Shown piece by piece: positions 757 to 52,483 of a DNA stretch of 64,000 nt. The translations under genes were made by a program, and so were the position numbers. The stretch is taken from the sequence record PP496440.1, one strand, 5' to 3'. Each line of letters opens with the position of its first letter. Position 1 is the stretch's first letter. A model generated the notes under the pieces. That model did not search any database. It was not told the origin of the DNA and saw only the letters and a list, made by a program, of their open reading frames with translations.

Positions 757-3138
757 ATGGCAGCCAAACCACCTGACAAGATCTCACGACGTAAGCTACA
801 GGAACTTCTGGATCGGAAAGAGGATCAACTCAAGTCTGATCGCCGATCCAAGAAGATCATCACCAAGCTCACGTCGTTCGAGAAGGCGAAAGCCGAAGCC
901 AGAGACATCACCAAGCCCTATCACAAGGAAGTGACTCTGGACGACATCATGGACCTTCGCGGAATGCTGGGCGGCAATCGCGCCATGGCCCCGTTGGAAG
1001 GTCAGTTCCTGATGACACCGGAGGAAGAACAGATCTCGGAACTGGGACTGTCGGAAACGCTGGATGAGATTTTCTCCAGTGGTATCGGCTTGCCTCCTGA
1101 CTTGAAGATCGATGACCGGGATCTGAAAGCGCTGCCCAACGTGTTCGAGTGGACCACCTCGAAGATGGGCGCGAAGATGAAGCCGTACGCCCGGCAATAC
1201 GAAGTGATGATCAAGTCCTGCTCTGAGTGGTGCCCACCGTGCACCAAGAAGCGCTGGCCGAAACACAAGATGGGTTTCGCGAAATCGTTCCACTACTCGC
1301 CCGCTCTCCCCGTGGATTTTGACGTAGCCAACATTGACGACTACGTTCAGCACTTGGAGAACGGGCGTTGTCCGTGTTGCAAGAAAAGAAAATCGGAGTT
1401 GGTGCGCAGCGGGCAGTTGCCTCTGGTTACCGAACTGGACATGTGTCTGGGTCAACGGGCGGGTAAGTCTGCAACGATCTATTCCCTGATCCCCTACCTC
1501 ATTCACCGTTGGCTCAAGGTTCCTTCGCCGGTACAGGCGCTGGGACTGCTGGACAACACCCTGCTGTCCGGGGTAGTAGTAGCATTGACCTATGCCAAGG
1601 CCACGTCCCTTCTCTGGCAGCCGATCCACAACGCTATCTCGAACACCGGCTGGTTCAAAGAGTACAACGCGCTGTTGAACCACTACCAAGAGTTCTACGG
1701 CGAGGAATTCTTCAAGCTGAAAGACTCGTTCGTGCAGTACGGCCACCGGAACATGATCTTCAGTCCCTCCGGCCCGAACAAGCGTACACTCCGGGGTGAG
1801 ACACGTATCTGGACCGGCACGGACGAAATCGGTTTCTTCTACCATGGCGACGACGGCGACGACAAGGAACGTGCATCGGCCAACGAGGTATACGTATCGC
1901 TGGGTAACTCCCTATTCACGGTTAAGAAGGCAGCGGAAACTGCCTTACTGTCCGGCATGGACGGTATTCCTATGACTCTGATGGCGAACATCTCTTCGCC
2001 ATCGAGCTACAAAGATAAGATCATGTCGCTGATCCGTGAGTTCGAGAACGAGCCTACCGTCGTGACCATGCACTTGCCTACCTGGGAGTTCAACCCCAAG
2101 ACCAGCAAGGGTGACTTCAAGAAGGAATACGCGGCGGATCCCGTCAAGGCAGACCGTGACTTCGGGGCTAACCCGCCTATGTCCGAGAACCCCTACCTTC
2201 CTGACCTCGAACCCATGAAGCGTCAGGTGCTCAAGTCCCAGCGCAATATGGTAGAGTACGAATATAAGCTGATCAAGGCTACCAACGGTGCACCACAGCG
2301 CTATGCCAAGATCAAGCGACTCCGTGAGTTCATGGACAAGGTGCCGAAGCACGTGATGACCATCGACGCCGGGCACAGCAACAACTCCTTCGCCTTGACC
2401 GTTGGTTATCCAGAGATGTACCGAGGGAAGCTTCGTCTGGTGTGCACGGGTGTGGTGGAAGTGGCGCCGACACATGGCCAGAACACTATAAACTTCACCA
2501 AGATCGCCAAGGAAATGATCTACCCATTGATTGAGCACTTCAACGTTGGTCTGGTGGTGACTGATCGCTGGAACTCTTTGAAGCTGCTGCATGACATCGA
2601 AGACGAGTACGGTATCTTCACGTTGCAGTACAGTCTGCGACCAGATGACTTCAACTTTATCTACGACTACTACATGGATGAAGACTTCGCCTATGCCCGT
2701 ATTCCGGTGCCTGAGATTCCCATTGATCAGATCATGGACGTCGATATCGATGAGTACCCGAAGTGCTTCGGTCCCGGCAACAAGACCACGGGCAGGCCAA
2801 TGCCTGTAGCGCACATGATCCATCAGTCGCAAACGGTTCAGGTGAATAGCCGGGGCAGTGTGGACAAAGGCTTGGGTCTGACCGATGACATCTTCCGTGC
2901 GTTCAACTTGCTCACCTATGTCTGCGTGGATGAGGAGTACGTGGAAGAGTACATGCTGCTAACGGGTTCGGTCGCGGGTGAGAAGCGTGCCATTGGCGCC
3001 ATGGCAAGAGGTGGCATGACGCCGGGTAGTCGGGGCAGTGGTGGCAAGGCAATGAGTACCTCCGTCGGCGCAGTCGCGGGGGCAAGCACAGCCTCCGGCA
3101 GCGGCGGGAACGGTGTATTCAGCCGTACGTCCCGCTAA
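757..3138 (+). CDS. terL: Terminase large subunit
   Basis: Walker A GQRAGKS, Walker B WTGTDE, RNase H-like nuclease motif TIDAGHSNNSF and C-terminal DDIF; CxxC...CPCC insert before Walker A. Confidence 0.88.
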   Translation: MAAKPPDKISRRKLQELLDRKEDQLKSDRRSKKIITKLTSFEKAKAEARDITKPYHKEVTLDDIMDLRGMLGGNRAMAPLEGQFLMTPEEEQISELGLSETLDEIFSSGIGLPPDLKIDDRDLKALPNVFEWTTSKMGAKMKPYARQYEVMIKSCSEWCPPCTKKRWPKHKMGFAKSFHYSPALPVDFDVANIDDYVQHLENGRCPCCKKRKSELVRSGQLPLVTELDMCLGQRAGKSATIYSLIPYLIHRWLKVPSPVQALGLLDNTLLSGVVVALTYAKATSLLWQPIHNAISNTGWFKEYNALLNHYQEFYGEEFFKLKDSFVQYGHRNMIFSPSGPNKRTLRGETRIWTGTDEIGFFYHGDDGDDKERASANEVYVSLGNSLFTVKKAAETALLSGMDGIPMTLMANISSPSSYKDKIMSLIREFENEPTVVTMHLPTWEFNPKTSKGDFKKEYAADPVKADRDFGANPPMSENPYLPDLEPMKRQVLKSQRNMVEYEYKLIKATNGAPQRYAKIKRLREFMDKVPKHVMTIDAGHSNNSFALTVGYPEMYRGKLRLVCTGVVEVAPTHGQNTINFTKIAKEMIYPLIEHFNVGLVVTDRWNSLKLLHDIEDEYGIFTLQYSLRPDDFNFIYDYYMDEDFAYARIPVPEIPIDQIMDVDIDEYPKCFGPGNKTTGRPMPVAHMIHQSQTVQVNSRGSVDKGLGLTDDIFRAFNLLTYVCVDEEYVEEYMLLTGSVAGEKRAIGAMARGGMTPGSRGSGGKAMSTSVGAVAGASTASGSGGNGVFSRTSR

Positions 3139-3420: not shown

Positions 3421-5235
3421 ATGATCCGAATGAACAACCGCATGCGGTTATCAGACAAGAATGGTCGCATGACGACCATCGCGTCACCGCAGAGCATGAG
3501 TGGCAGCATGGGTGCAGGGGGTCACCCCATGACTCGCGCCATGGGTGGCAACGCGTCCACCCGAGACAGCCTGCTCGACGGCATCCTGAAGCTCGACCCG
3601 GATGTCATGCGTCAGATCTACATGGATATGTACCTGTTCGATCCGACCATCGGCGGTGCCACTGACTTGCTGGCCCAGAGCCCGTGGTCGGACTACGATC
3701 TAGTAGACGCTGAGCCGGATCAACTGGACATCTTCTACCGGTCGATGGAACTGCTGAACTACCGAGAGCTGATGCCGGAGTTCACCATCGACTACCTGAC
3801 GCTGGGCGCTGCCGTAGGTACTCCGCTGTACAGCGTGTCGGAAAAGGCATTCACCGACATCATTCCGCACTCCATCGCCAGTATTCAGGTTCAGGAAGTT
3901 CCACTGTATTCCCAAGACCCTGTGCTGACGCTGCTGGTGCCGGAAGAGATGCGCACGTTCGCGACCAGTCAAGACCCTTATGTGGTTAAGATGCGGCAGC
4001 GCATGACACCGAAGATGGTGGAAGCATTCCGAGCGCAGGAGGTTGCACTTGATCCGGTGACCACGCTGTACGTACCCCGCACTTCGTTCTCGACAGTGCA
4101 GCAAGGCGTATCGCTGTACACCCGCTTGATCCCGATCTACTTGCTCGAACGTCTGCTGTACCGTGGCACGTTGACCGAGGCTACTCGCCGCCAGCGCTCG
4201 ACGTTGCACATTCAAGCCGGTGACGATCTGTGGAACCCGGACGACAACGAGCTGAACAGTCTGGTGCAGCTGTTCCTGCAAGCCGAGCAAGATCCAGTGT
4301 CGGCCATCGTCGCTACCCAGATGAACGTGCAGACTCAGGAGATTCGAGCTGCCGGTGACTTCTGGAAGTGGACGGATAACCTGGAGCAGTTCAACGACAT
4401 CAAGCTGCGAGGCATGGGGATCAACGAATCCTACATGTCAGGTGATGTGACCTACGACAACCTGAGTACCAGTGTTACCATGTTCCAAGAGCAGCAGGAC
4501 TCGCTCCGGGAAATGATGGTACGTAAGACTCTATATACCAAGGTGTTCCCGGTCCTGTCGATCACCCACGACTTCCGCCGCAAGGAAGAGTCGAGTCATG
4601 CTCGCCGCGAGATGGCTACGGCCAAGGCTGCACAGAAGCGTACCCTGAACGATTCGTTCGCGTTCCAGGTGAACGACAAATCGTCGCTGGTCATCCCCAA
4701 AGTGGTGTGGCACAAGAAGCTACGTTCCATGTACACCGAAGGTTCGTTCGACATCCTCGAGAAGCTGTCGGAAGCTGGTCTGCCGGTTACACTCCGGGCA
4801 TGGGCCGCTGCCGGGGGTTACGACCTGGATAGCGCCATGCAGGCAATGGCCGACGACGCCAAGCTGCGGAAGCAGGTGTCAGACTTCAAAGCCGAGAACG
4901 GTATCGACGCCGGTACGGAAAACGACTTCAACCTCGATGGTGATACTGAGCTGTCGATGGTCAGGTCCGCATCCGCGTTGCTGGACAAGGCAATGGGTGG
5001 CCGGGGTATGAAGCCACTTGGTCTGCTGGGCCGTGAGTTCAGTGAGGCGGATTCAGAAGTGGTACGCCATGACCATTCCGGCAAGCGCGTCTGGGTAGTT
5101 GACCAGCACCGAGCCAAACGGGAAGAGAACGACAAGGCAATGAAGGCTTTGAAGCAGTCCTCTGATCCGGACTTCCGTGCCAAGACGATTGCCGCCGTTA
5201 ACCGTAGACAAGGCGCGAGAAAGACTCGCGGCTGA
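3421..5235 (+). CDS. Probable portal protein
   Basis: 604 aa; sits between terminase and prohead protease; YLFDPTIGGATDLL and LYRGTLTEATRRQRSTLHIQAG resemble large-phage portal signatures. Confidence 0.6.
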   Translation: MIRMNNRMRLSDKNGRMTTIASPQSMSGSMGAGGHPMTRAMGGNASTRDSLLDGILKLDPDVMRQIYMDMYLFDPTIGGATDLLAQSPWSDYDLVDAEPDQLDIFYRSMELLNYRELMPEFTIDYLTLGAAVGTPLYSVSEKAFTDIIPHSIASIQVQEVPLYSQDPVLTLLVPEEMRTFATSQDPYVVKMRQRMTPKMVEAFRAQEVALDPVTTLYVPRTSFSTVQQGVSLYTRLIPIYLLERLLYRGTLTEATRRQRSTLHIQAGDDLWNPDDNELNSLVQLFLQAEQDPVSAIVATQMNVQTQEIRAAGDFWKWTDNLEQFNDIKLRGMGINESYMSGDVTYDNLSTSVTMFQEQQDSLREMMVRKTLYTKVFPVLSITHDFRRKEESSHARREMATAKAAQKRTLNDSFAFQVNDKSSLVIPKVVWHKKLRSMYTEGSFDILEKLSEAGLPVTLRAWAAAGGYDLDSAMQAMADDAKLRKQVSDFKAENGIDAGTENDFNLDGDTELSMVRSASALLDKAMGGRGMKPLGLLGREFSEADSEVVRHDHSGKRVWVVDQHRAKREENDKAMKALKQSSDPDFRAKTIAAVNRRQGARKTRG

Positions 5236-5259: not shown

Positions 5260-7452
5260 ATGAAACACAATCCACAAGTCACGCGCCTTTCCGCCTTGGC
5301 TGCTGCCGGTATCAACGTCAAGTCAGGCTCGCCGGTAGATGTCGTGCACCAGCACACTCGCACTCTGGGCAACAACATCGACAAGTTGAGCACGCCTCGT
5401 CAGTGGGCCATTGCTCATCTGATGAACGAAGCGGCCGACCTGCTGGTTGTAGAAACTGGCAGCCTTCAAGACGACTACATCGACTACTTCAAAGGTGCAC
5501 TGGAGAAGTTCGGTGTGTCCTCCCCGGCGGAATTGACCCAAGAGAAGGCTTCCGAGTTCTTCAACTGGATAAGTGCCAACTGGAAGAAAGGTGAAGGCCC
5601 GAAAGAAACGGCAGGCACCTTCAACTCCGACAAGTCTCGTCGTATCCTTCGTGATCAGCTTACGGCGGTATTGAGTCTCCCCGGCTCGAAACGTAAGTCT
5701 TTTGTGGCGCAAGTACTCAAGACGGCCAAAGCTGAAGGCACTACTATCCCCGAGCCTCAGATGTATGATGATCGCGGGCTCACTGCGTGGATGAACTCGA
5801 AAGTAACTGATCTTCAGCTCACTCAAGATGTACTCACCGACATGGGTGTACTGAAGTGGGCAGAAGAGTCGGAAGCCAACGTCGAGACTGCCGCCCCTAC
5901 TGAGCTGCGCAAGTCTCTGGACAAACTCCTACCCGTACTCAAGAAGGCATGGCCCGCTGGCGCGGACATGGACGAGATGGAGGGTTACATCTCGCTGTCC
6001 GAACTGGATGGGGATAGCCCTGACGAAGCTGGCGCCGACGCTTTCAGCAAGCTCAAAGGCGTGACCAAATGGAAGAAGATGAAGGGCAGTGGTCACTCTT
6101 ATGATCGCTGGTCGTTCACTCTGGCCGGTGTTGATGCCGAAGTCGAGTTCGACGAAGACGGTATCGGTTACGTCTGGTTGCCAGCGTCGTTCTATCCGGA
6201 GCAGGCCAGCGTAGAAACTGCCCGCACCCAGATGGATATCTTGGCCACCCGTGTGAGCGACGCCAAGTACGCTCTGTCCATCGCCAAAACGCCGGAAGCC
6301 AAGGCTAAGGCTAAGGACCGACTGACCAAGGCTAAAGCTGCCCAGTTGGCTTTCCGTAGAAAGAGCAAGGCTACGGCGGAAGTAGAAACCGCCAGCCAGT
6401 TCTCTTTCGTCAAAGTCACCCAGAACGGTAACACGTATCGTCTGGAAGCGTCGGACACCGGTAACTTCAAATCCGTCATGATCTGGAAAGGCGGCATGTG
6501 GACGAAGCCAGGTCCGGACGAAGCGTTCAAGGAGAAAGAGCCACACCGCATGCTGGGCGCCCTGCGCACGCCCAACGGTGCAGAACTGGCTACCCTCAAC
6601 CTGCCGGAAACCCCAGTGGCAAGCATGGAAGAGATGGCCGAGCTGTTCGGCGCCATGGGTATCGAAGAGAGCGAGATCCGTCGCTTCTACGGCGGTGGCC
6701 CAGAGTGGAATGATCGCAGCGTCTACGATGGCAACATCCCGAGCGTATCCCCCACTAATCTGGGTGTGAACCCGACGTACGCCTACACCGACATGCACCC
6801 GCTGCGTGCCTATGAGGCGGAAGACACCATCCGTATCAACGGCCTTGACGCCACGTTGCAATCCATCGACAACGGGCAGGCTGTGTTCACAGTTGACGGC
6901 GTAGATACTACCACGGTGCCGCTGGACAACATCGTGGTCGCTGAAGGTGAAGCCTCGGTAGTAGCCACTGCCATGGTATCTCATCGCGTACTGGTCACTG
7001 CCGGTCACGAAGACCTGACTCAGTACAAGTCGCTGCGTCACGACTTCGAGGCTGTTACTGCGAACCACCAAGAGCTGTCGCAAGTCAAGGTAGGCCCGGC
7101 ACTGCAAACCCTCGCCAAGGCGGGTAACCGTCGCGCTCTGGTACTGGCCCACGCCGGTGTGCAGCGTATCAACGAAGGTCATGCACTGCTCAAAGCCTCC
7201 ATCGGCTACGGCAAGGAAGCGGCGACCGCCAGTGTCATCACAGAGCTGGCCGATCTGAACAACTTGTGTGGCAAGGATCAAGTGTCGGCACAAGACGTGA
7301 TCGACTCCGCGCCAGTGGTCACTCATCTGAAGCAGGGGGAGTTCAAGGCAGACATGCCGGACGTGGTTGACTCTTCGGACTTCGAGCTGAACGATCCGCA
7401 AGCCGAACAGGCGTCCACGCGCAAGAGCCGCTTCCCAAGCCGCAAGCGCTAA
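5260..7452 (+). CDS. Modular head/virion protein (putative protease-processed polyprotein)
   Basis: 730 aa in head module; repeated VETA/xxTA motifs between modules; one module shared with 10284..11969. Confidence 0.7.
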   Translation: MKHNPQVTRLSALAAAGINVKSGSPVDVVHQHTRTLGNNIDKLSTPRQWAIAHLMNEAADLLVVETGSLQDDYIDYFKGALEKFGVSSPAELTQEKASEFFNWISANWKKGEGPKETAGTFNSDKSRRILRDQLTAVLSLPGSKRKSFVAQVLKTAKAEGTTIPEPQMYDDRGLTAWMNSKVTDLQLTQDVLTDMGVLKWAEESEANVETAAPTELRKSLDKLLPVLKKAWPAGADMDEMEGYISLSELDGDSPDEAGADAFSKLKGVTKWKKMKGSGHSYDRWSFTLAGVDAEVEFDEDGIGYVWLPASFYPEQASVETARTQMDILATRVSDAKYALSIAKTPEAKAKAKDRLTKAKAAQLAFRRKSKATAEVETASQFSFVKVTQNGNTYRLEASDTGNFKSVMIWKGGMWTKPGPDEAFKEKEPHRMLGALRTPNGAELATLNLPETPVASMEEMAELFGAMGIEESEIRRFYGGGPEWNDRSVYDGNIPSVSPTNLGVNPTYAYTDMHPLRAYEAEDTIRINGLDATLQSIDNGQAVFTVDGVDTTTVPLDNIVVAEGEASVVATAMVSHRVLVTAGHEDLTQYKSLRHDFEAVTANHQELSQVKVGPALQTLAKAGNRRALVLAHAGVQRINEGHALLKASIGYGKEAATASVITELADLNNLCGKDQVSAQDVIDSAPVVTHLKQGEFKADMPDVVDSSDFELNDPQAEQASTRKSRFPSRKR

Positions 7453-7463
7453 TAATCTGGACA

Positions 7464-7483
7464 GGGGGATCGCAAGGTCCCCT
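7464..7483 (+). repeat. GCAA-tetraloop hairpin repeat, copy 1
   Basis: GGGGGATCGCAAGGTCCCCT; near-identical copies at 13558-13573 and 47711-47730; no U tract. Confidence 0.75.
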
Positions 7484-7499
7484 CATCAGGAACTTGACT

Positions 7500-9149
7500 A
7501 TGACTATCAAGAGTGCTACGTTTGCGGAAGCTGAATCGCAAGCTCAAGGCCTAGCCAACTCCATGGGATGGCCGGGGGAGGTAATGGACAACGGTGACGG
7601 CACTGTCACTCTGTCGCCACCCGACGCATGGGACGATGAAGAGAACCCCGGCAAGGTGGCAGCGTCCAAGCTGACCGGTAACAAGGACTGTCACGTCTTC
7701 GCCAGTATGGCGGTACCCAGTGAAGGTGAGTGGATGGCGGTAGTCATTCAAGGTACACCGGCGCTGGTACTCATCGACCAAGGATCTGGTGAAGGCTGGT
7801 TGACCCTTCAGGCCCCTGCGGACTTCGATGTTCCGGAGAGCGTGCTGATTCCTTTCCAACAACGCCTGACCCAAACGGAAACCGCTTCAATGAAGAAGAC
7901 TATCGTGTTGGCTAACGTCTCCAGCGACCCGGCCACTCCTGATTATCAGGAAGCCTCGATCACTGGTGTTACGCCGGAAGGTCACATCTCAGTAGCGTTC
8001 GCTGACGGTGACATCGGTGTGTACCAAGGTAAGTTCGACCCTGCTGGTCTGATGCCAATCGCGGAAGCGGCAGGCGTTGAAGTTGCCAGCTTCAAACACC
8101 ACACCATGGTTCTGGCCAACGTTGGCACTGCGGCAGCACCTGAATACGCCGAAGCTGAGGTGGTTGGTTCCACTGAGGAAGGCCATCTGGAAGTCGCGTT
8201 CGCTGATGGTGACGTGGGCATCTACCGTTCCTTGTTCCACCCTACCGGTATCTTGCCGCTGGGTGTGACTGCCGAGACGGCCAGTGTGCTCATCGAGGTA
8301 GCTGCACGTACGGCAATGAGCCCGGAGCAGAAGCTCAAGCGTGCTGAGGACCTGCTCAAGCTGCGCACACTGCACGACAAGTACGAGACCAACACCGACG
8401 CCCTGAAAGGCAAGAAAGGTCCGGAGAACAAAGCCAAGCGGGACAAGAACAACGCTGACAAGGCCAAACTCCGTGCCAAGCTGGACAAGATGGGTGTCAC
8501 GTCCCTGCCGAGCAAAGCTCACCTTCAGCGCACCATCAAGCAGCACAGCGATCTGCCGACCCGTATGCGTGCTGGGGAGAAGAAGCCAGCTACTAAGGTA
8601 CCAACGAATAAGGCAGCACGGGACGCGGCTAAGAAGAAGTATGAGCCCACTAAAAAGGGACCAGCAGCCCCCGCGAAGTCCGAAGGTATGAGTGACAAGG
8701 ATCGTGCCGCGAAGGTTAAAGCCTTGAAAGCCAAGATCGAAGACCTCAAGGGTAGCCACAAGTACAGCATCAACAATCACAGTGCGGCGGCGAAGGAAGA
8801 CAACGCCCAAGTGCTGGACAAGATCCGTGCCGTGGAAGCTGAGATAAAAGCACTTCGCAAGAAACCCGCAGCGAAGAAGCCTAACTCGGTGGCCGTTCTT
8901 CGAGAAGCAGCTTTGGCTTTGGAAGACTATCAAAAGTCTATCAAGGGTAAGAAGCATACCCCAGCTAACAAGTTAAAGCTGGCAGAGCTAAAAGACGCTG
9001 TAGCTGAAGCTAGAAAGGTCGCCCGTGCTGACAACGCCAAGTCTGCAGCACGGGGTAAGGCACAGCACGCGAAGGATAGTGCCAAGCATGCCAAAGGTCA
9101 AAGGGAATTTGATAAAGACGTTAAACTCGGACTGAAGAGCGTTGACTAA
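7500..9149 (+). CDS. Modular head/virion protein with two Tudor/SH3-like repeats and Lys/Ala-rich C-terminal half
   Basis: Internal duplication VLANV...Y.EA.......GH..VAFADGD.G.Y; ETAS/EVAS motifs; AGGA RBS before ATG 7500. Confidence 0.7.
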   Translation: MTIKSATFAEAESQAQGLANSMGWPGEVMDNGDGTVTLSPPDAWDDEENPGKVAASKLTGNKDCHVFASMAVPSEGEWMAVVIQGTPALVLIDQGSGEGWLTLQAPADFDVPESVLIPFQQRLTQTETASMKKTIVLANVSSDPATPDYQEASITGVTPEGHISVAFADGDIGVYQGKFDPAGLMPIAEAAGVEVASFKHHTMVLANVGTAAAPEYAEAEVVGSTEEGHLEVAFADGDVGIYRSLFHPTGILPLGVTAETASVLIEVAARTAMSPEQKLKRAEDLLKLRTLHDKYETNTDALKGKKGPENKAKRDKNNADKAKLRAKLDKMGVTSLPSKAHLQRTIKQHSDLPTRMRAGEKKPATKVPTNKAARDAAKKKYEPTKKGPAAPAKSEGMSDKDRAAKVKALKAKIEDLKGSHKYSINNHSAAAKEDNAQVLDKIRAVEAEIKALRKKPAAKKPNSVAVLREAALALEDYQKSIKGKKHTPANKLKLAELKDAVAEARKVARADNAKSAARGKAQHAKDSAKHAKGQREFDKDVKLGLKSVD

Positions 9150-9171
9150 CCACACCTGACTGGAGCAAGAC

Positions 9172-9933
9172 ATGAACAATGTTTTTGAAATGATTGCCCA
9201 GCAGAACGCCGAGATGAAACCCATCGACGTGCACAAGCTGGTTAAAGGCAAGGATGTAGATCCAAAGCTCAAAGAAATGACCACGGCCAAAGTCGGCATG
9301 CCCGGTTTGGCCCAGGCCATTACGTTCGCGGAGTGGTTGCCGTTCGCGGCCAAGACGTATCACTGCTCGCCGGACCCGAAGGATTACATTCTGGTCCCGA
9401 ACATCGTGATGCCGTCGGAGATCCCCAACCGTAACGGCGTGGGCTTCCCTCTGCAGCAACTGGTACGCTTCAACCCCGAGACTGGTTGCCAAGGCTTCCG
9501 TACGGCAGTCGGCAAGGGTACTTACGCTGACCACCAGAACAACACCGTAGCCCCACTGGCGAAAGGCGTGATCGTGGATTCGTTCATGCGCCCGCTGGAA
9601 GGCTTCAAGGGCGGCGTGTGGAAGTTGCTATTCCTCTTGGCGTACGACCGGTCCAAAGACCAAGCGCTCACCAACGCCATCTTGGCAGGCACTCGTACCA
9701 ACTACAGCATGGGCGCGTACCTGACCAAGTACACGTGCTCGATCTGTGGCCGGGACCGGGGCCAGTGTGTTCACTTGAGCGCACAGAAAGGTTCGGTGAA
9801 CTTCCGCAAGGTAGGGAACCAGCTGGCGTACTCACAGGCATACGAACCTATTTTCTTCGAGACGTCCTCGGTAGAAGATCCGGCTTTCGTATCGTCGATC
9901 ACCGGCGCTGACCACCTGCTTATCACTCGATAA
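9172..9933 (+). CDS. Prohead (maturation) protease
   Basis: YADH His motif, NYSMG Ser motif followed by CSIC, and FFETSSVEDPAF typical of HK97/herpes-fold prohead proteases; located in head module. Confidence 0.75.
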   Translation: MNNVFEMIAQQNAEMKPIDVHKLVKGKDVDPKLKEMTTAKVGMPGLAQAITFAEWLPFAAKTYHCSPDPKDYILVPNIVMPSEIPNRNGVGFPLQQLVRFNPETGCQGFRTAVGKGTYADHQNNTVAPLAKGVIVDSFMRPLEGFKGGVWKLLFLLAYDRSKDQALTNAILAGTRTNYSMGAYLTKYTCSICGRDRGQCVHLSAQKGSVNFRKVGNQLAYSQAYEPIFFETSSVEDPAFVSSITGADHLLITR

Positions 9934-9965
9934 GTGGGAACTCCGTAACAAGTAGAGGTGACATC

Positions 9966-10124
9966 ATGGGTATCACTACCATTCTCCTGATCGTGTTGAT
10001 CGTTCTGCTCGTCTGCGGCTTGCCCGTGTTCCCCTACTCCGCAGGTTGGGGTTATGGTCCATCTGGACTGCTCACGGTGATCGTCGTTATCCTGCTGATC
10101 CTCGTCTTGACCGGACGACTGTGA
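9966..10124 (+). CDS. DUF3309-family small membrane protein (52 aa, not in ORF track)
   Basis: Translated by hand: MGITTILLIVLIVLLVCGLPVFPYSAGWGYGPSGLLTVIVVILLILVLTGRL with the LP.FPYS.GWGYGPSG signature; GAGG RBS. Confidence 0.85.
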   Translation: MGITTILLIVLIVLLVCGLPVFPYSAGWGYGPSGLLTVIVVILLILVLTGRL

Positions 10125-10129
10125 AAACT

Positions 10130-10162
10130 GCCCGCTCTGGCAAACGCTGGGGCGGGCTTTTT
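10130..10162 (+). terminator. Intrinsic terminator ending the head module
   Basis: GCCCGC...GCGGGC stem followed by TTTTT. Confidence 0.8.
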
Positions 10163-10200
10163 CGTTTCCGCCGACGGGAAACAGGCCTAATTAAAAATAG

Positions 10201-10230
10201 TTGCACGGGCTGTTTTGGGTGTGCTATAAT
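10201..10230 (+). promoter_or_regulatory. Sigma70-type early promoter
   Basis: TTGCAC-N18-TATAAT with extended -10 TG; near-duplicate at 47120-47148. Confidence 0.8.
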
Positions 10231-10283
10231 AGCACCATGGCACTATTCAAGCGCCGCCCACTGTCCCAATGAGGAAAGCAACC

Positions 10284-11969
10284 ATGACCAGATTGACCCT
10301 AGCAACCGTCAACGCCGAGATAGCAAAGTCCGGTGGCAAAGAAACTCTGGTCAAGGGTAAGGGCTACTTCTACTGGATAGGTGGCCGTGCCGACGCCGAT
10401 CCTCAAATCTGGACTTCCATTTACGTTGCTGCGCTAAACCAGATGACGCTGGCCCAGTGGCTGGAAGACTGGAAGCGCAATGACGACCAATACAACAAAC
10501 CTACTCCCGACAAGGAAACCCGCAAAATGGCTATCAGACACGTTCAGACCCTCGCAGCTCCTACCAAATCCGGTAAGACGGCATCTGCCAACCCAGCACT
10601 GGAAGCAGCCGAAGCTGAACTTAAAAAGGTTCAGAGCACCATTCAGGGTTTCAAAGCCCGTGGCCTGGTCCCTACTTCCCCGTGGGAAAGGAAACTCAAG
10701 GACGCTAAGGCAGCTGTGTCCGCTGCCAAGAAAAAGAAGACCACTGCTGCTCCTGCACAGGAGACTGCTTCCCCGGCTACCGACTTCGCCAAGTCGTTGA
10801 AGAAGGGCGTTCGTGTACTGGTCAATCTCGGCAACACCAAAGAGCCGTCCTACTTCCTCGGCGCCATTACCAAGAACAACGCCAGCAAGGGTTCGGTCAA
10901 CGTGCTGTTCGATGACGGCGACGTTGCAGAGGTCCGTGCGATCAAATCCAAGGTCGGTATCGTGGGCATCGCCATCGATAAGGTACGCAAGTCGGAAGTT
11001 CCTGCTGACCAGATCGACAAGTGGCTGGCCGGTGCAGCTCCAACGACTAAGACCCCTGCCAGCCCGAAAGCGGCGGGAGAGTGGACTGTCAAGTCTATTG
11101 TGGCGTGGCTGGAAAGCGCAGGCTACACCAAACCAGAACCAACCCGGCTTCCTACCCGGTTCGAAAGGAAGCTTCCGTCTGGTGCTGTGATTCAAGCAGA
11201 TGTAAATATGAAAAAGACCGTGGCCCTAACCGCCATGGGTAAAGAAGGGTATGTACATTACACAGTTGACTCCTTCGCCAAGCTCAAGAACGCAGACTCT
11301 TCGCTTGCCAAGTCGGCTGTTGTCGGCACCAAGGTAGGGAACGCATTGATCCCGCCGAAAAAGTCGGGTTCACCTAAACCGTTCAGCCCAGCGGAAGCCC
11401 GGAAGGTCATCGGTGCTATCCCCGGCTGGAAGGCATCCAACGTGAAGAACAAAGCGTCAGCCACGTTCACCAAAGATTACCCGAACGGTGTAACTGCTAC
11501 CGCATTGATCTTCCCGACTCACGTTACGTTCAATTATCCTCAAGGTGAGAACGATCACGTCGGCGACTTGTCCAAGATCCCAGCCTATATCCAACAGATC
11601 GACGAGGATCAAGCCGCACCAGTAGAAGACGGCAAAGCACTGGATGATCTGGCCAAGGCATTGAAGGGCTGGCCGAACAAGGTCCTCCCACGGGATGCTG
11701 ACGAAGACAACTTCCTGCTGCGCGGGTTTGAAGATGATGACCTTCCGGCTGATGTGGAGCCAACCGCTGACGCCATCGAAGCACATGCAATCTCGATCTT
11801 CAAGAAGATGAAAAGTGTTGACAACTTCAAGAAGAGCAAGATGTACCACGGGGATAACACTTACTCCTTCTCGGCTGGCGGCACCGTGGGCTACGTGTAC
11901 TTCGACGAAGATGGCGTTGGCATGGTCCGTGCAACCCCGTTCCAAGAGTCCACGCCGGGAAAGTCCTAA
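10284..11969 (+). CDS. Multi-module protein sharing domains with the two head proteins
   Basis: Tudor-like VLVNLG..V.FDDGD module, K/A-rich helices, C-terminal module homologous to part of 5260..7452; start set by GAGG RBS. Confidence 0.8.
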   Translation: MTRLTLATVNAEIAKSGGKETLVKGKGYFYWIGGRADADPQIWTSIYVAALNQMTLAQWLEDWKRNDDQYNKPTPDKETRKMAIRHVQTLAAPTKSGKTASANPALEAAEAELKKVQSTIQGFKARGLVPTSPWERKLKDAKAAVSAAKKKKTTAAPAQETASPATDFAKSLKKGVRVLVNLGNTKEPSYFLGAITKNNASKGSVNVLFDDGDVAEVRAIKSKVGIVGIAIDKVRKSEVPADQIDKWLAGAAPTTKTPASPKAAGEWTVKSIVAWLESAGYTKPEPTRLPTRFERKLPSGAVIQADVNMKKTVALTAMGKEGYVHYTVDSFAKLKNADSSLAKSAVVGTKVGNALIPPKKSGSPKPFSPAEARKVIGAIPGWKASNVKNKASATFTKDYPNGVTATALIFPTHVTFNYPQGENDHVGDLSKIPAYIQQIDEDQAAPVEDGKALDDLAKALKGWPNKVLPRDADEDNFLLRGFEDDDLPADVEPTADAIEAHAISIFKKMKSVDNFKKSKMYHGDNTYSFSAGGTVGYVYFDEDGVGMVRATPFQESTPGKS

Positions 11970-12082
11970 GTCCCGCTAAGGGACAGACCCAAGACGAGCT
12001 GAAAGCTTTCTGTCGACAGATAGGGTTGTGGGTTTCCGGTTCTAGCGTAGCCCCTAGGAACTATCGTATCTACGACGGGGGT

Positions 12083-12274
12083 ATGGAAGGTAATAAGAAA
12101 GTGTTGGATGTAGTTCTGGGCGATGAGTTTATGGCTAACGCTGATGGATCAGGCAACAGTTATGATCGACTCCTCGATAAACTGAATGCCCTGAGCGACA
12201 AGAAGTTCATCGTCAGTCCTTGCGCTGGGGTGTATGGAAACGTCGGTAAAGATCTGACCGGATTGTCCTACTGA
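12083..12274 (+). CDS. Small hypothetical protein (63 aa) behind a structured leader
   Basis: GGGGGT RBS-like sequence before ATG; open frame. Confidence 0.4.
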   Translation: MEGNKKVLDVVLGDEFMANADGSGNSYDRLLDKLNALSDKKFIVSPCAGVYGNVGKDLTGLSY

Positions 12275-12282
12275 GCCAGATA

Positions 12283-12423
12283 CGGTAAATGATCCATGTA
12301 TCGGAGGTACCGGGGCTAGATTCATAGCTGGTTCCGGGAGTCACCCTAAGAGGTGTAGGGTCAAAGGGTTTCACCCTCTTAGGTTTCGTCCGCGCTTTCC
12401 TTACCGATTGCGCGGACTTTTTT
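12283..12423 (+). ncRNA. Candidate small non-coding RNA
   Basis: Begins at GGTAAATGA motif, two hairpins (incl. perfect CCTAAGAGG/CCTCTTAGG stem), ends in terminator; no ORF above 12 codons on + strand. Confidence 0.35.
12388..12423 (+). terminator. Intrinsic terminator
   Basis: GTCCGCGC/GCGCGGAC stem followed by T6. Confidence 0.8.
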
Positions 12424-12450
12424 ATCTGCAAAAATATATTCGAAAATAAG

Positions 12451-12480
12451 TTGTACACAATGATGCCCACGTGCTATACT
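12451..12480 (+). promoter_or_regulatory. Sigma70-type early promoter with AT-rich UP element
   Basis: TTGTAC-N18-TATACT, TG extension, AAAAATATATTCGAAAATAAG upstream. Confidence 0.7.
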
Positions 12481-12551
12481 GGAATCACGGGGGCGTGATG
12501 CCCCACCAATACCGGCCCGAACGGCCACCACTGTCCCAAGAGGAATGCACC

Positions 12552-14699: not shown

Positions 14700-15878
14700 A
14701 TGACGAAGAAGATTGGTACAGCACTGGCCGTATTGGTGTGCATGTTGACACTACAAGGTCAGGCCCATGCCGACTACGACACCAAGGCTTGCAACGTGTC
14801 GTTCACGGAAGAGCAGGAACGAATACTGGGGACTGCCCATCAGGTAGGTTCCCCGGTCAACTTCGGAGTGACTCTCCAAGCCATTGCATGGAAAGAGTCC
14901 TTTGTCGGGGACAAGGTAGTTCGCGCTAACCCAACCGACGGGCGTTACGGTTCTTACGGCATCACCCACGTGCAGCTCTCGACGGGCGCATGGATGCTAG
15001 ACCAGAAGCCCACCAAACCATTCCGAACAGGTCTTCGTAACGATCTAGTCACCGACGACAGCTATGCGCTCCAGTTCGCTGCGGCCTATCTGGTGCACAC
15101 GGAAACCATCGCCAAGAAGATCACCCGTGACGGTAACCGCCAATGGCGAGCCACGGTGGCGTCTTACAACGGTTCAGGCGCCCAAGCGCGCCGTTACGTG
15201 GAAGATGTTGCTGACAAAGTATCCTACCTTAAATCCTGTGGGTTGACCAAGACCATGAAACGAATCAGTACCCCTCTGGTTGCTTCCGATAGCACTGCCA
15301 AGAAGTCTGCCAAGCAGAAGCTGCGGGATCGACTTGCCGAGAAGCGAGCGGCCACATCCGTTGCTGAGACCAAATCCAAGCGCCCCAACACCAAGTCTCG
15401 CAAAGTGGCGGATGAACCCGTCAAGGTGAAGCGTGCCCGTGACGTACTGGCCGCCGCCGGTGCACTCCCGCGCAAGTCTCCGAAGTCAGTATTGCGTAAC
15501 GCTGACCCTCTGACCAAAGAGTACATCCAGAAGAAGACGATGGACATCTACACCCGTGCACTCAAGCGCGCCAAAGGTGATCCTACCGTAATCGCATGGG
15601 CCAAGGGGTTGGCGGTCAAGCACATCAAAGACCCACTGGATCAACAGTTCATGTTCTCAGTGCACACACTGGCGGCATGCTGTGTTGCCGGTGGGCAGAC
15701 GAAGTTTCAAGCCGATCTGGACTTCCTCAACTTGATGCTGGCAACCTATCTGAACCCGAGCGTGGCACTGGTGTTCAAGAACGGCAAATTCGACGCCGCG
15801 CTGATCAGTAAGGAAGAAGCCGCCGAGCGCATGCACAACGAAGACGGCATCAGCGTCATCTACAGCGTTATCGTATAA
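14700..15878 (+). CDS. Exported lytic transglycosylase (SLT-like) with basic linker and unknown C-terminal domain
   Basis: Signal peptide; LQAIAWKES (catalytic Glu), SYGITHVQ and VASYNGSG correspond to SLT motifs I-III. Confidence 0.75.
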   Translation: MTKKIGTALAVLVCMLTLQGQAHADYDTKACNVSFTEEQERILGTAHQVGSPVNFGVTLQAIAWKESFVGDKVVRANPTDGRYGSYGITHVQLSTGAWMLDQKPTKPFRTGLRNDLVTDDSYALQFAAAYLVHTETIAKKITRDGNRQWRATVASYNGSGAQARRYVEDVADKVSYLKSCGLTKTMKRISTPLVASDSTAKKSAKQKLRDRLAEKRAATSVAETKSKRPNTKSRKVADEPVKVKRARDVLAAAGALPRKSPKSVLRNADPLTKEYIQKKTMDIYTRALKRAKGDPTVIAWAKGLAVKHIKDPLDQQFMFSVHTLAACCVAGGQTKFQADLDFLNLMLATYLNPSVALVFKNGKFDAALISKEEAAERMHNEDGISVIYSVIV

Positions 15879-30418: not shown

Positions 30419-30451
30419 CTCTCAAGCCCCACTGTCCCATTGAGGTGATCC

Positions 30452-47087: not shown

Positions 47088-47135
47088 AACCCCGTGTAAA
47101 ACTATCTGTCAAATGGTAGTTGCACGGGGTTTTTT
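47088..47135 (+). terminator. Long-stem terminator overlapping the -35 of the next promoter
   Basis: AACCCCGTGTAA/TTGCACGGGGTT stem followed by TTTT. Confidence 0.7.
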
Positions 47136-47148
47136 CGTGTGCTATAAT
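47120..47148 (+). promoter_or_regulatory. Sigma70-type early promoter
   Basis: TTGCAC-N17-TATAAT, TG extension; duplicate of 10201 promoter including downstream GCACCATGGCAC. Confidence 0.8.
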
Positions 47149-47215
47149 GGCACCATGGCACCAGCCATGCCCGGAAACATTGAGCTTCCGGCCACTGTCC
47201 CAAGAGGAACGCACC

Positions 47216-52448: not shown

Positions 52449-52483
52449 CCTGAAACACCCACTGTCCCAATGAGGTATCTACC

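Follow-up and report, generated by a model that had tools for sequence, protein, structure and literature searches.

An acidic domain shared by a cassette-bearing head-locus protein and a separately transcribed mosaic protein in Pseudomonas phage vB_PpuM-KoPa-5

Why does one protein domain occur twice in a phage genome, once in the middle of a protein encoded among the head genes and once at the end of a protein with a transcription unit of its own? This question is raised by a 64,000-nucleotide stretch of DNA (here called the window) that represents bases 1-64000 of Pseudomonas phage vB_PpuM-KoPa-5 (PP496440.1, 201,088 bp; 100% identity). KoPa-5 is a jumbo myovirus of Pseudomonas putida and one of nine closely related P. 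putida jumbo myoviruses from Estonia and Finland, assigned to genus cluster G3 in the CEPEST collection. The two proteins are gp5 and gp10, and their common domain is referred to as B. We favor, with a probability of about 0.55, a reading in which gp5 is a carrier with protease-delimited cassettes, one of which, B, is reused in the separately transcribed mosaic protein gp10.

The two B domains are homologous, with a similarity well beyond chance. The gp5 copy spans positions 5893-6207 (residues 212-316) and lies exactly between the motifs NVETA (207-211) and SVETA (317-321), while the gp10 copy spans positions 11631-11945 (residues 450-554) and stops 7 residues short of the C-terminus. The initial annotation had proposed this relationship by eye; its coordinates and strings were correct, and pairwise alignment proved significant with both BLASTP and phmmer. 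With BLASTP, the two domains matched at E 9e-9 and 33% identity, and the full proteins at E 2e-8 and 37% identity across 110 columns. In a six-frame phmmer search of each domain against all 832 open reading frames (ORFs) of the window, the sole match was the other copy (E 2.6e-6 and 2.2e-5). A two-sequence profile matched only the two known copies among the 2542 ORFs of the complete 201-kb genome, with no third. Domain B was present in gp10 of all nine sister phages, invariant or nearly so, and in gp5 of three (KoPa-5, Voja-6 and Pori-4). The gp5 cassettes of the sister phage Peetri carry an FDE.GI-like patch visible by eye, and they were rejected as B homologs because the match was not significant (E 0.016-0.16).

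The organization of gp5 explains how the first copy is embedded. In the following list, and throughout the text, the arrow marks the putative cut site.

5260..7452, plus strand: gp5, 730 aa, annotated as hypothetical, between the portal and prohead protease genes; E↓TA sites at E116, E209, E319 and E376.
5260..5607, plus strand: N-terminal part of gp5, residues 1-116, ending PKE↓TAG; nearly invariant in six phages.
5608..5886, plus strand: cassette A, residues 117-209, ending NVE↓TAA; shared by KoPa-5, Pori-4 and Amme-1, while Peetri, Aura and SKa-4 lack it or have another cassette in its place.
5887..6216, plus strand: cassette B, residues 210-319, homologous to the gp10 C-terminus.
6217..6387, plus strand: cassette C, residues 320-376, basic and helical, ending EVE↓TAS; among the aligned phages in KoPa-5 and Pori-4 only.
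6388..7452, plus strand: C-terminal part of gp5, residues 377-730 plus stop, starting directly after the last E↓TAS; nearly invariant in six phages.

We aligned gp5 from six of the nine phages (KoPa-5, Pori-4, Amme-1, SKa-4, Aura and Peetri). The middle of the protein was variable across the alignment, and its pieces start and stop on E↓TA sites. The full set of cassettes A, B and C occurs in gp5 of KoPa-5 and Pori-4, and also in Voja-6. Amme-1 carries cassette A only; residues 210-374 are missing, with the junction at the P1 Glu of the NVE site. In SKa-4 no cassette is present, and the N- and C-terminal parts are joined via a single SVE↓TAS. Aura has a different 99-residue cassette between the same sites, and Peetri carries yet another cassette as a tandem pair, with GVE↓VAA between the copies. 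Five cassette layouts were thus found among phages sharing 91-98% nucleotide identity. The suggestion that the B module is bounded exactly by the motifs is borne out by the extent of the homology together with this natural presence/absence variation, and the polyprotein model of gp5 gains support from sister-phage indels falling exactly on the motifs and from the motif statistics given below.

The gp5 family appears to be confined to these phages. A word-indexed search of 5.8 billion proteins returned no member outside the nine sister phages, tblastn found nothing outside the genus except a 45-residue patch, and the only PHROG match was phrog_28651, covering residues 67-110.

If the E↓TA motif is a processing site, a matching protease is expected, and one is encoded in the same gene block.

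9172..9933, plus strand: gp8, a prohead (head maturation) protease of the T4 gp21 type; phrog_18299, E 5e-62.

Prohead core protease is the annotation given to the relatives of gp8 in Vibrio, Xanthomonas, Erwinia and Dickeya phages, RSL1 and phage G; KoPa-5 therefore encodes a gp21-type (assemblin-like) enzyme. Cleavage after Glu at P1 is the rule for gp21-type proteases in T4 (PMC9026906) and SPN3US (PMC10052503). Across six-frame ORFs of at least 80 aa in the whole genome, ETA[SA] occurred seven times, against ~2.8 expected in a proteome of 63.7k residues: twice in gp5, twice in gp6, and once each in gp10, the major capsid protein gp161 and gp104. Six of the seven occurrences fall in gp5, gp6, gp10 and the capsid protein, which together make up 3.5% of the proteome. 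Variants add to these sites, namely ETAR and ETAG in gp5 and VE↓VAS between the repeats of gp6. The site in the capsid protein, QVE↓TAS, lies at residues 67-69 of 361, or 19% of its length. The capsid-protein homolog of phage PaBG (36% identity) loses ~20% of its mass during maturation (PMC7412058). A recurrent P1-Glu motif is therefore common to the cassettes and to the expected propeptide boundary of the capsid protein, and we consider the xVE↓TA motif to be very probably the cut site of gp8.

It could be objected that the motifs are not cleavage sites at all, that gp5 is an ordinary multidomain protein and that only the domain duplication is real. The region of the capsid protein bearing the motif is indeed poorly conserved in more distant relatives. 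However, the motif is concentrated in four proteins forming a small fraction of the proteome, sits where the capsid propeptide is expected to end, and coincides with every cassette junction of gp5. The sites moreover use differing codons, indicating that the peptide is conserved and that the motif is not a DNA repeat. Taken together, this makes the objection very improbable.

The seventh ETA[SA] belongs to gp104 (genome positions 81703..82281), a 192-aa hypothetical protein with KE↓TAA near its N-terminus, adjoined by a gene annotated as a peptidase. This protein may be a further protease substrate with a short propeptide.

A second candidate polyprotein, gp6, is encoded between gp5 and the protease.

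7500..9149, plus strand: gp6, 549 aa, candidate polyprotein with an N-domain, TQTE↓TAS, two tandem T repeats, TAE↓TAS and a basic tail.

The two T repeats occupy residues 128-194 and 195-259, with GVE↓VAS between them and TAE↓TAS closing the array. The C-terminal part (8277-9146, residues 260-549) contains 73 Lys and Arg residues with a net charge of +36, and its end varies among the sister phages; a DNA-binding internal protein and a scaffold-like region are both conceivable. In four of these phages, gp6 has an additional cassette of ~210 aa immediately behind its first site.

The order of the head block is gp1, terminase, gp3, portal, gp5, gp6, prohead protease gp8 and gp9, after which gp10 follows as a separate transcription unit.

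757..3138: terminase.
3421..5235: portal.
9966..10124, plus strand: gp9, a 52-aa, almost wholly hydrophobic protein; last gene of the head operon, directly after the protease.

This location of gp5 and gp6, between the portal and protease genes, raises the possibility that both are scaffold or core proteins whose cassettes are filler expelled at maturation, that B has an assembly role or none, and that the gp10 copy is an accident of shuffling. Features typical of a T4 gp22/gp67-type core (PMC9026906) include several cut sites, extended helical segments rich in charge (here cassette C, with a pI (isoelectric point) of 10.4 and a helix predicted at residues 319-380, and the +36 tail of gp6) and fragmentation. 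Nevertheless, the cassettes differ between phages with more than 95% identity, and the absence of any cassette in SKa-4 argues that they are dispensable for assembly and speaks against an essential scaffold role. Xanthomonas phage PhiXhv-16, whose protease and capsid protein are homologous to those of KoPa-5, has no counterpart of gp5 or gp6 there, and its protease directly follows the portal. In Vibrio phage GR11A a single 178-aa gene occupies the portal-protease gap, and neither the T module nor E↓TA-type motifs were found in that region. In addition, KoPa-5 has a separate structural-protein gene next to the capsid-protein gene, which is the usual place of a scaffold gene, and B, for which a compact fold is predicted, is preserved unchanged or nearly so in the gp10 proteins of all nine. 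A scaffold or core role for gp5 and gp6 is therefore unlikely. GR11A also has a small gene at the position matching gp9, after the protease.

The second copy of B stands in a different setting. The initial annotation placed gp10 behind a terminator and a sigma-70 promoter, and both elements were found and are conserved in the sister phages.

10130..10167, plus strand: intrinsic terminator closing the terminase-portal-gp5-gp6-protease-gp9 block; hairpin at 10130-10157 with a 12-bp stem (9 GC pairs), and a T-run.
10201..10230, plus strand: sigma-70-type promoter of gp10; TTGCAC, an 18-nt spacer including TG, and TATAAT.
10258..10269, plus strand: leader box CCACTGTCCCAA, just upstream of the gp10 ribosome-binding site.
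10284..11969, plus strand: gp10, 561 aa, a mosaic protein in its own transcription unit.

The gp10 promoter is near-consensus, with an extended -10 element (TGcTATAAT) and an A/T-rich stretch upstream. It was identical in five of the six phages examined, with one base changed in Pori-4, and the leader was conserved in all six. Equivalent promoters with an extended -10 element lie at 12451-12480, 47120-47148 and genome positions 184107-184136, each lying after a terminator and preceding transcript starts that resemble one another (GGCACCATGGCAC or GGAATCACGGG); two TTGACA-type promoters were found further along the genome. Such sigma-70 promoters each head blocks of mostly small hypothetical genes, and the capsid, sheath, portal and other structural genes inspected had none in front of them. 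They are likely to be the early promoters of the phage, and early expression of gp10 by the host RNA polymerase would be a reasonable deduction from the promoter sequence. A late-promoter consensus was sought in upstream regions and by k-mer enrichment in non-coding gaps, where only terminator-derived words were enriched.

The leader box itself occurs five times in the window (10258-10269, 12528-12539, 30429-30440, 47192-47203 and 52459-52470), against 0.4 copies expected. In front of several genes it precedes the ribosome-binding site by 1-2 bases, some of these genes having a sigma-70 promoter farther upstream and others not. Its role could be that of a promoter specific to the phage or of an element acting in translation.

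Within gp10, six segments could be distinguished.

Residues 1-93: N domain, phrog_9154; in many unrelated phages it forms a small protein by itself.
Residues 94-160: variable basic linker, ending in an invariant AQE↓TAS.
Residues 161-258 (10764..11057, plus strand): T module, homologous to both gp6 repeats.
Residues 259-364: variable module.
Residues 365-445: M module, duplicated in Peetri.
Residues 446-561 (11619..11966, plus strand): B domain, the second copy; pI 4.6.

The relationship of the T module to gp6 was significant with phmmer (E 1e-6) and stronger with jackhmmer (E 1e-15 to 1e-19 per repeat). The same module is found at the N-termini of three further KoPa-5 proteins and of gpX, an extra 403-aa protein encoded between the gp9 terminator and the gp10 promoter in SKa-4, Amme-1 and Pori-4. 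The sole hint at its fold is a sub-threshold match to the Tudor-like Pfam family PF21744 (E 0.033).

Genome 101345..102166: gp126, a baseplate-hub neighbor, starting with a T module.
Genome 118994..120142: gp140, starting with a T module.
Genome 124781..125944: gp147, with a zinc ribbon, starting with a T module.
SKa-4 9830-11041, Amme-1 10084-11295, Pori-4 9952-11163: gpX; absent from KoPa-5, where its place would be between 10167 and 10201.

The C-terminal half of gpX shows an R / S-x-S / E-x-E spacing by eye, for which Pfam and PHROG gave no support, and we make no claim of an ADP-ribosyltransferase.

The makeup of gp10 opens the most substantial alternative, in which both proteins are head proteins. 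Here gp10 would enter the prohead and be cut at AQE↓TAS (residue 160), B would be a paralogous domain of internal or ejection proteins, and the capsid would be the sole route of delivery. The gene lies directly behind the head-protease operon; the protein contains one of the seven ETA[SA] motifs of the genome, conserved in six of six alleles and situated at a domain boundary, and it has its T module in common with gp6 and its B domain in common with gp5. Phage SPN3US provides a precedent, with paralogous ejection proteins that have long, multiply cleaved propeptides (PMC10052503). Against this, a strong terminator divides gp10 from the head operon, and its conserved consensus sigma-70 promoter is of the kind that serves groups of small genes with no structural role. 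The motif may have traveled with the T module. The paralog gpX begins at the equivalent position and lacks both the motif and an N-terminal part. The N domain, moreover, is free-standing in many unrelated phages. We regard this alternative as a real possibility, though one that falls clearly short of even odds.

Several observations weigh against our preferred reading of a cassette carrier and a separately transcribed mosaic protein. The presence in gp10 of the same cut-site motif, next to a T module shared with a head protein, means that gp10 may also be packaged, in which case the pattern would reflect paralogy between two head proteins and not two delivery routes. At the same time, a lone ETA[SA] in gp10 has a chance probability of ~2.5%, and it may simply have been inherited along with the adjoining T module. 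The capsid route is evidently optional, given that six of the nine phages lack cassette B in gp5 while gp10 always has the domain. The early timing of gp10 is deduced from its promoter consensus, and no late promoter could be defined. The cassette inserted in gp6 of the sister phages has a bounding site on one side only, the structural model of gp5 is poor (pLDDT 40, see below) and unsuitable for a fold search, and B is acidic, in contrast to the basic internal proteins of T4 (PMC9026906). Finally, we infer both the cleavage at E↓TA and the packaging of gp5. The proposal that an effector domain is supplied from the capsid as well as by early synthesis accordingly stands in part, for the two copies and their settings rather than for an effector role: gp10 does form its own unit with a sigma-70 promoter, but it may be a head protein, and the capsid copy is optional.

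On the preferred reading, gp5, and likewise gp6, would be a genus-specific accessory carrier of head modules, in which conserved ends enclose an exchangeable array of cassettes. The cassettes would be delimited by the cut site of the gp21-type protease, with cleavage after Glu in x-x-E↓T-A-[S/A]. Within the prohead, the protease would cut cassette B free as a folded fragment of 110 residues, acidic and alpha/beta in character, which would presumably remain in the head and enter the cell with the DNA. The mosaic gp10 would be assembled from the same genus-specific pool of modules, having T in common with gp6 and B, long diverged at ~35% identity, in common with gp5. It would be transcribed on its own, probably early, from a host-type sigma-70 promoter behind the head-operon terminator. 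Module shuffling would in this way place one domain into two contexts.

What B itself does was approached through its family, fold and charge. A profile of both copies searched against 1.84 billion cluster representatives returned the gp10 family only, with no relatives outside the phage genus, and sequence searches of gp5 and gp10 against Pfam, PHROG and the Protein Data Bank (PDB) gave nothing useful for B. AlphaFold2 modeling of gp10 residues 440-561 from a three-row alignment yielded a compact, moderately confident structure, with a mean predicted local distance difference test score (pLDDT) of 75.7 and a predicted template modeling score (pTM) of 0.71. It consists of a helix, a long acidic loop with a short strand, a second helix and a four-stranded sheet. 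In the full-length model of gp5, the B region shows the same order of elements at low confidence. A Foldseek search of the B model against PDB gave nothing significant (best E 0.18), and the best match in BFVD was an uncharacterized PaBG protein of borderline significance (E 1.1e-3, template modeling (TM) score 0.42). Foldseek rows for Hsp90 and RnlA were rejected, having TM scores below 0.4. The structural comparison suggested in the initial annotation therefore agreed in the order of elements, within the limits of the low-confidence gp5 model, and yielded no significant fold match.

Both copies of B are acidic, with a pI of 4.5 in gp5 and 4.6 in gp10 and a net charge of -8 or -9, concentrated in the loop. 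The cassette in gp5 has a mass of 12 kDa, a pI of 4.5 and a net charge of -9. Speculatively, such an acidic surface would suit a nucleic-acid-mimicking inhibitor. From its variability and delivery context only, the most likely class for B would be a non-essential host-interaction cargo, acting in takeover or counter-defense. A wider and more doubtful extension of this idea is a natural plug-in system in which head carriers accept interchangeable cargo and the same modules are wired to host-type early promoters; B would then be present from DNA entry and topped up by gp10, and the cassettes would form a fast-evolving counter-defense toolkit. Escape mutations of these phages were looked for in the paper on RexAB in the same host, where none had been obtained.

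The closest parallel is found in the internal proteins of phage T4. IPI, IPII and IPIII are non-essential cargo that enters the prohead and is freed by a gp21-type protease after Glu; at least one of them (IPI*) is a small alpha/beta protein that counters restriction and leaves the head along with the DNA, and the set of internal proteins varies among close relatives of T4 (PMC9026906). The cargo set of gp5 likewise varies between close relatives, with a gp21-type protease and Glu at the putative P1. Unlike in T4, where each cargo has its own gene behind a 10-residue N-terminal tag, the cargo of gp5 lies in frame inside a 730-aa carrier with a site on both sides. A short N-terminal targeting peptide of ~10 residues followed by a cut site is not a feature of either protein, as cassette B does not begin until residue 210 of gp5, and in gp10 the site lies at residue 160. 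No sequence relationship with the T4 proteins was seen, and packaging, established in T4, is what we infer here.

Delivery of related proteins by two routes is also known from T4, where Alt is packaged and injected and the paralogous ModA and ModB are made from early genes (PMC5512222). These are enzymes of established activity, whereas B has no recognizable catalytic or binding signature. A second precedent for two routes comes from phiKZ-like phages, with their virion and non-virion RNA polymerases.

Phages SPN3US, phiKZ and 201phi2-1 have paralogous families of internal head proteins and a gp21-like protease that cuts at A-X-E, with several cuts per propeptide (PMC10052503). KoPa-5 differs from these phages in belonging to the capsid/protease group of PaBG, Lu11, RSL1 and the Erwinia Y3 type, in the strong Thr-Ala at P1'-P2' of its putative site, and in the lack of sequence similarity. 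We found no description, for the SPN3US, phiKZ and 201phi2-1 families, of a presence/absence polymorphism of cassettes like that of the KoPa-5 group. Polyvalent proteins (Iyer et al. 2017) likewise combine unrelated modules in one polypeptide and are predicted to travel with the DNA and be cut (PMC5512222). They are defined by conflict domains, such as zincin-like peptidases, ADP-ribosyltransferases, methylases and nucleases, and usually have an embedded peptidase, whereas gp5, gp6 and gp10 would be cut in trans by the head protease. When conflict domains were sought in these three proteins, no Pfam match rose above threshold, PHROG matches were to families of unknown function only, and no PDB sequence match was obtained.

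Compared with these systems, what seems to be new is a carrier head protein with an in-frame array of cassettes that are flanked by sites and polymorphic for presence or absence, and the reappearance of its modules in a gene under a promoter of its own. Should the motifs indeed be cut sites, gp5 would be a natural form of the engineered T4 cargo fusions that are released by the head protease, and one that varies between near-identical phages. Modules flanked by E↓TA would then provide a simple sequence rule for capsid-delivered proteins in a poorly studied lineage of jumbo phages, and an orphan acidic domain kept by every member would be a candidate host-interaction factor. If there is only domain paralogy between head proteins, the locus would represent ordinary jumbo-phage biology.

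Two further regions of the window deserve mention. Downstream of gp10, ~480 unannotated bases (11970-12450) contain an 82-codon ORF (12026..12274) and a terminator-like hairpin at ~12390-12425; this region varies among the sister phages, and Aura has a 105-aa gene replacing gp11. Farther along, gp15 (14700-15878) gave a sub-threshold match to an SLT transglycosylase (E 0.002) and also matched phrog_600, pointing to a possible virion-associated or lysis-related muralytic protein.

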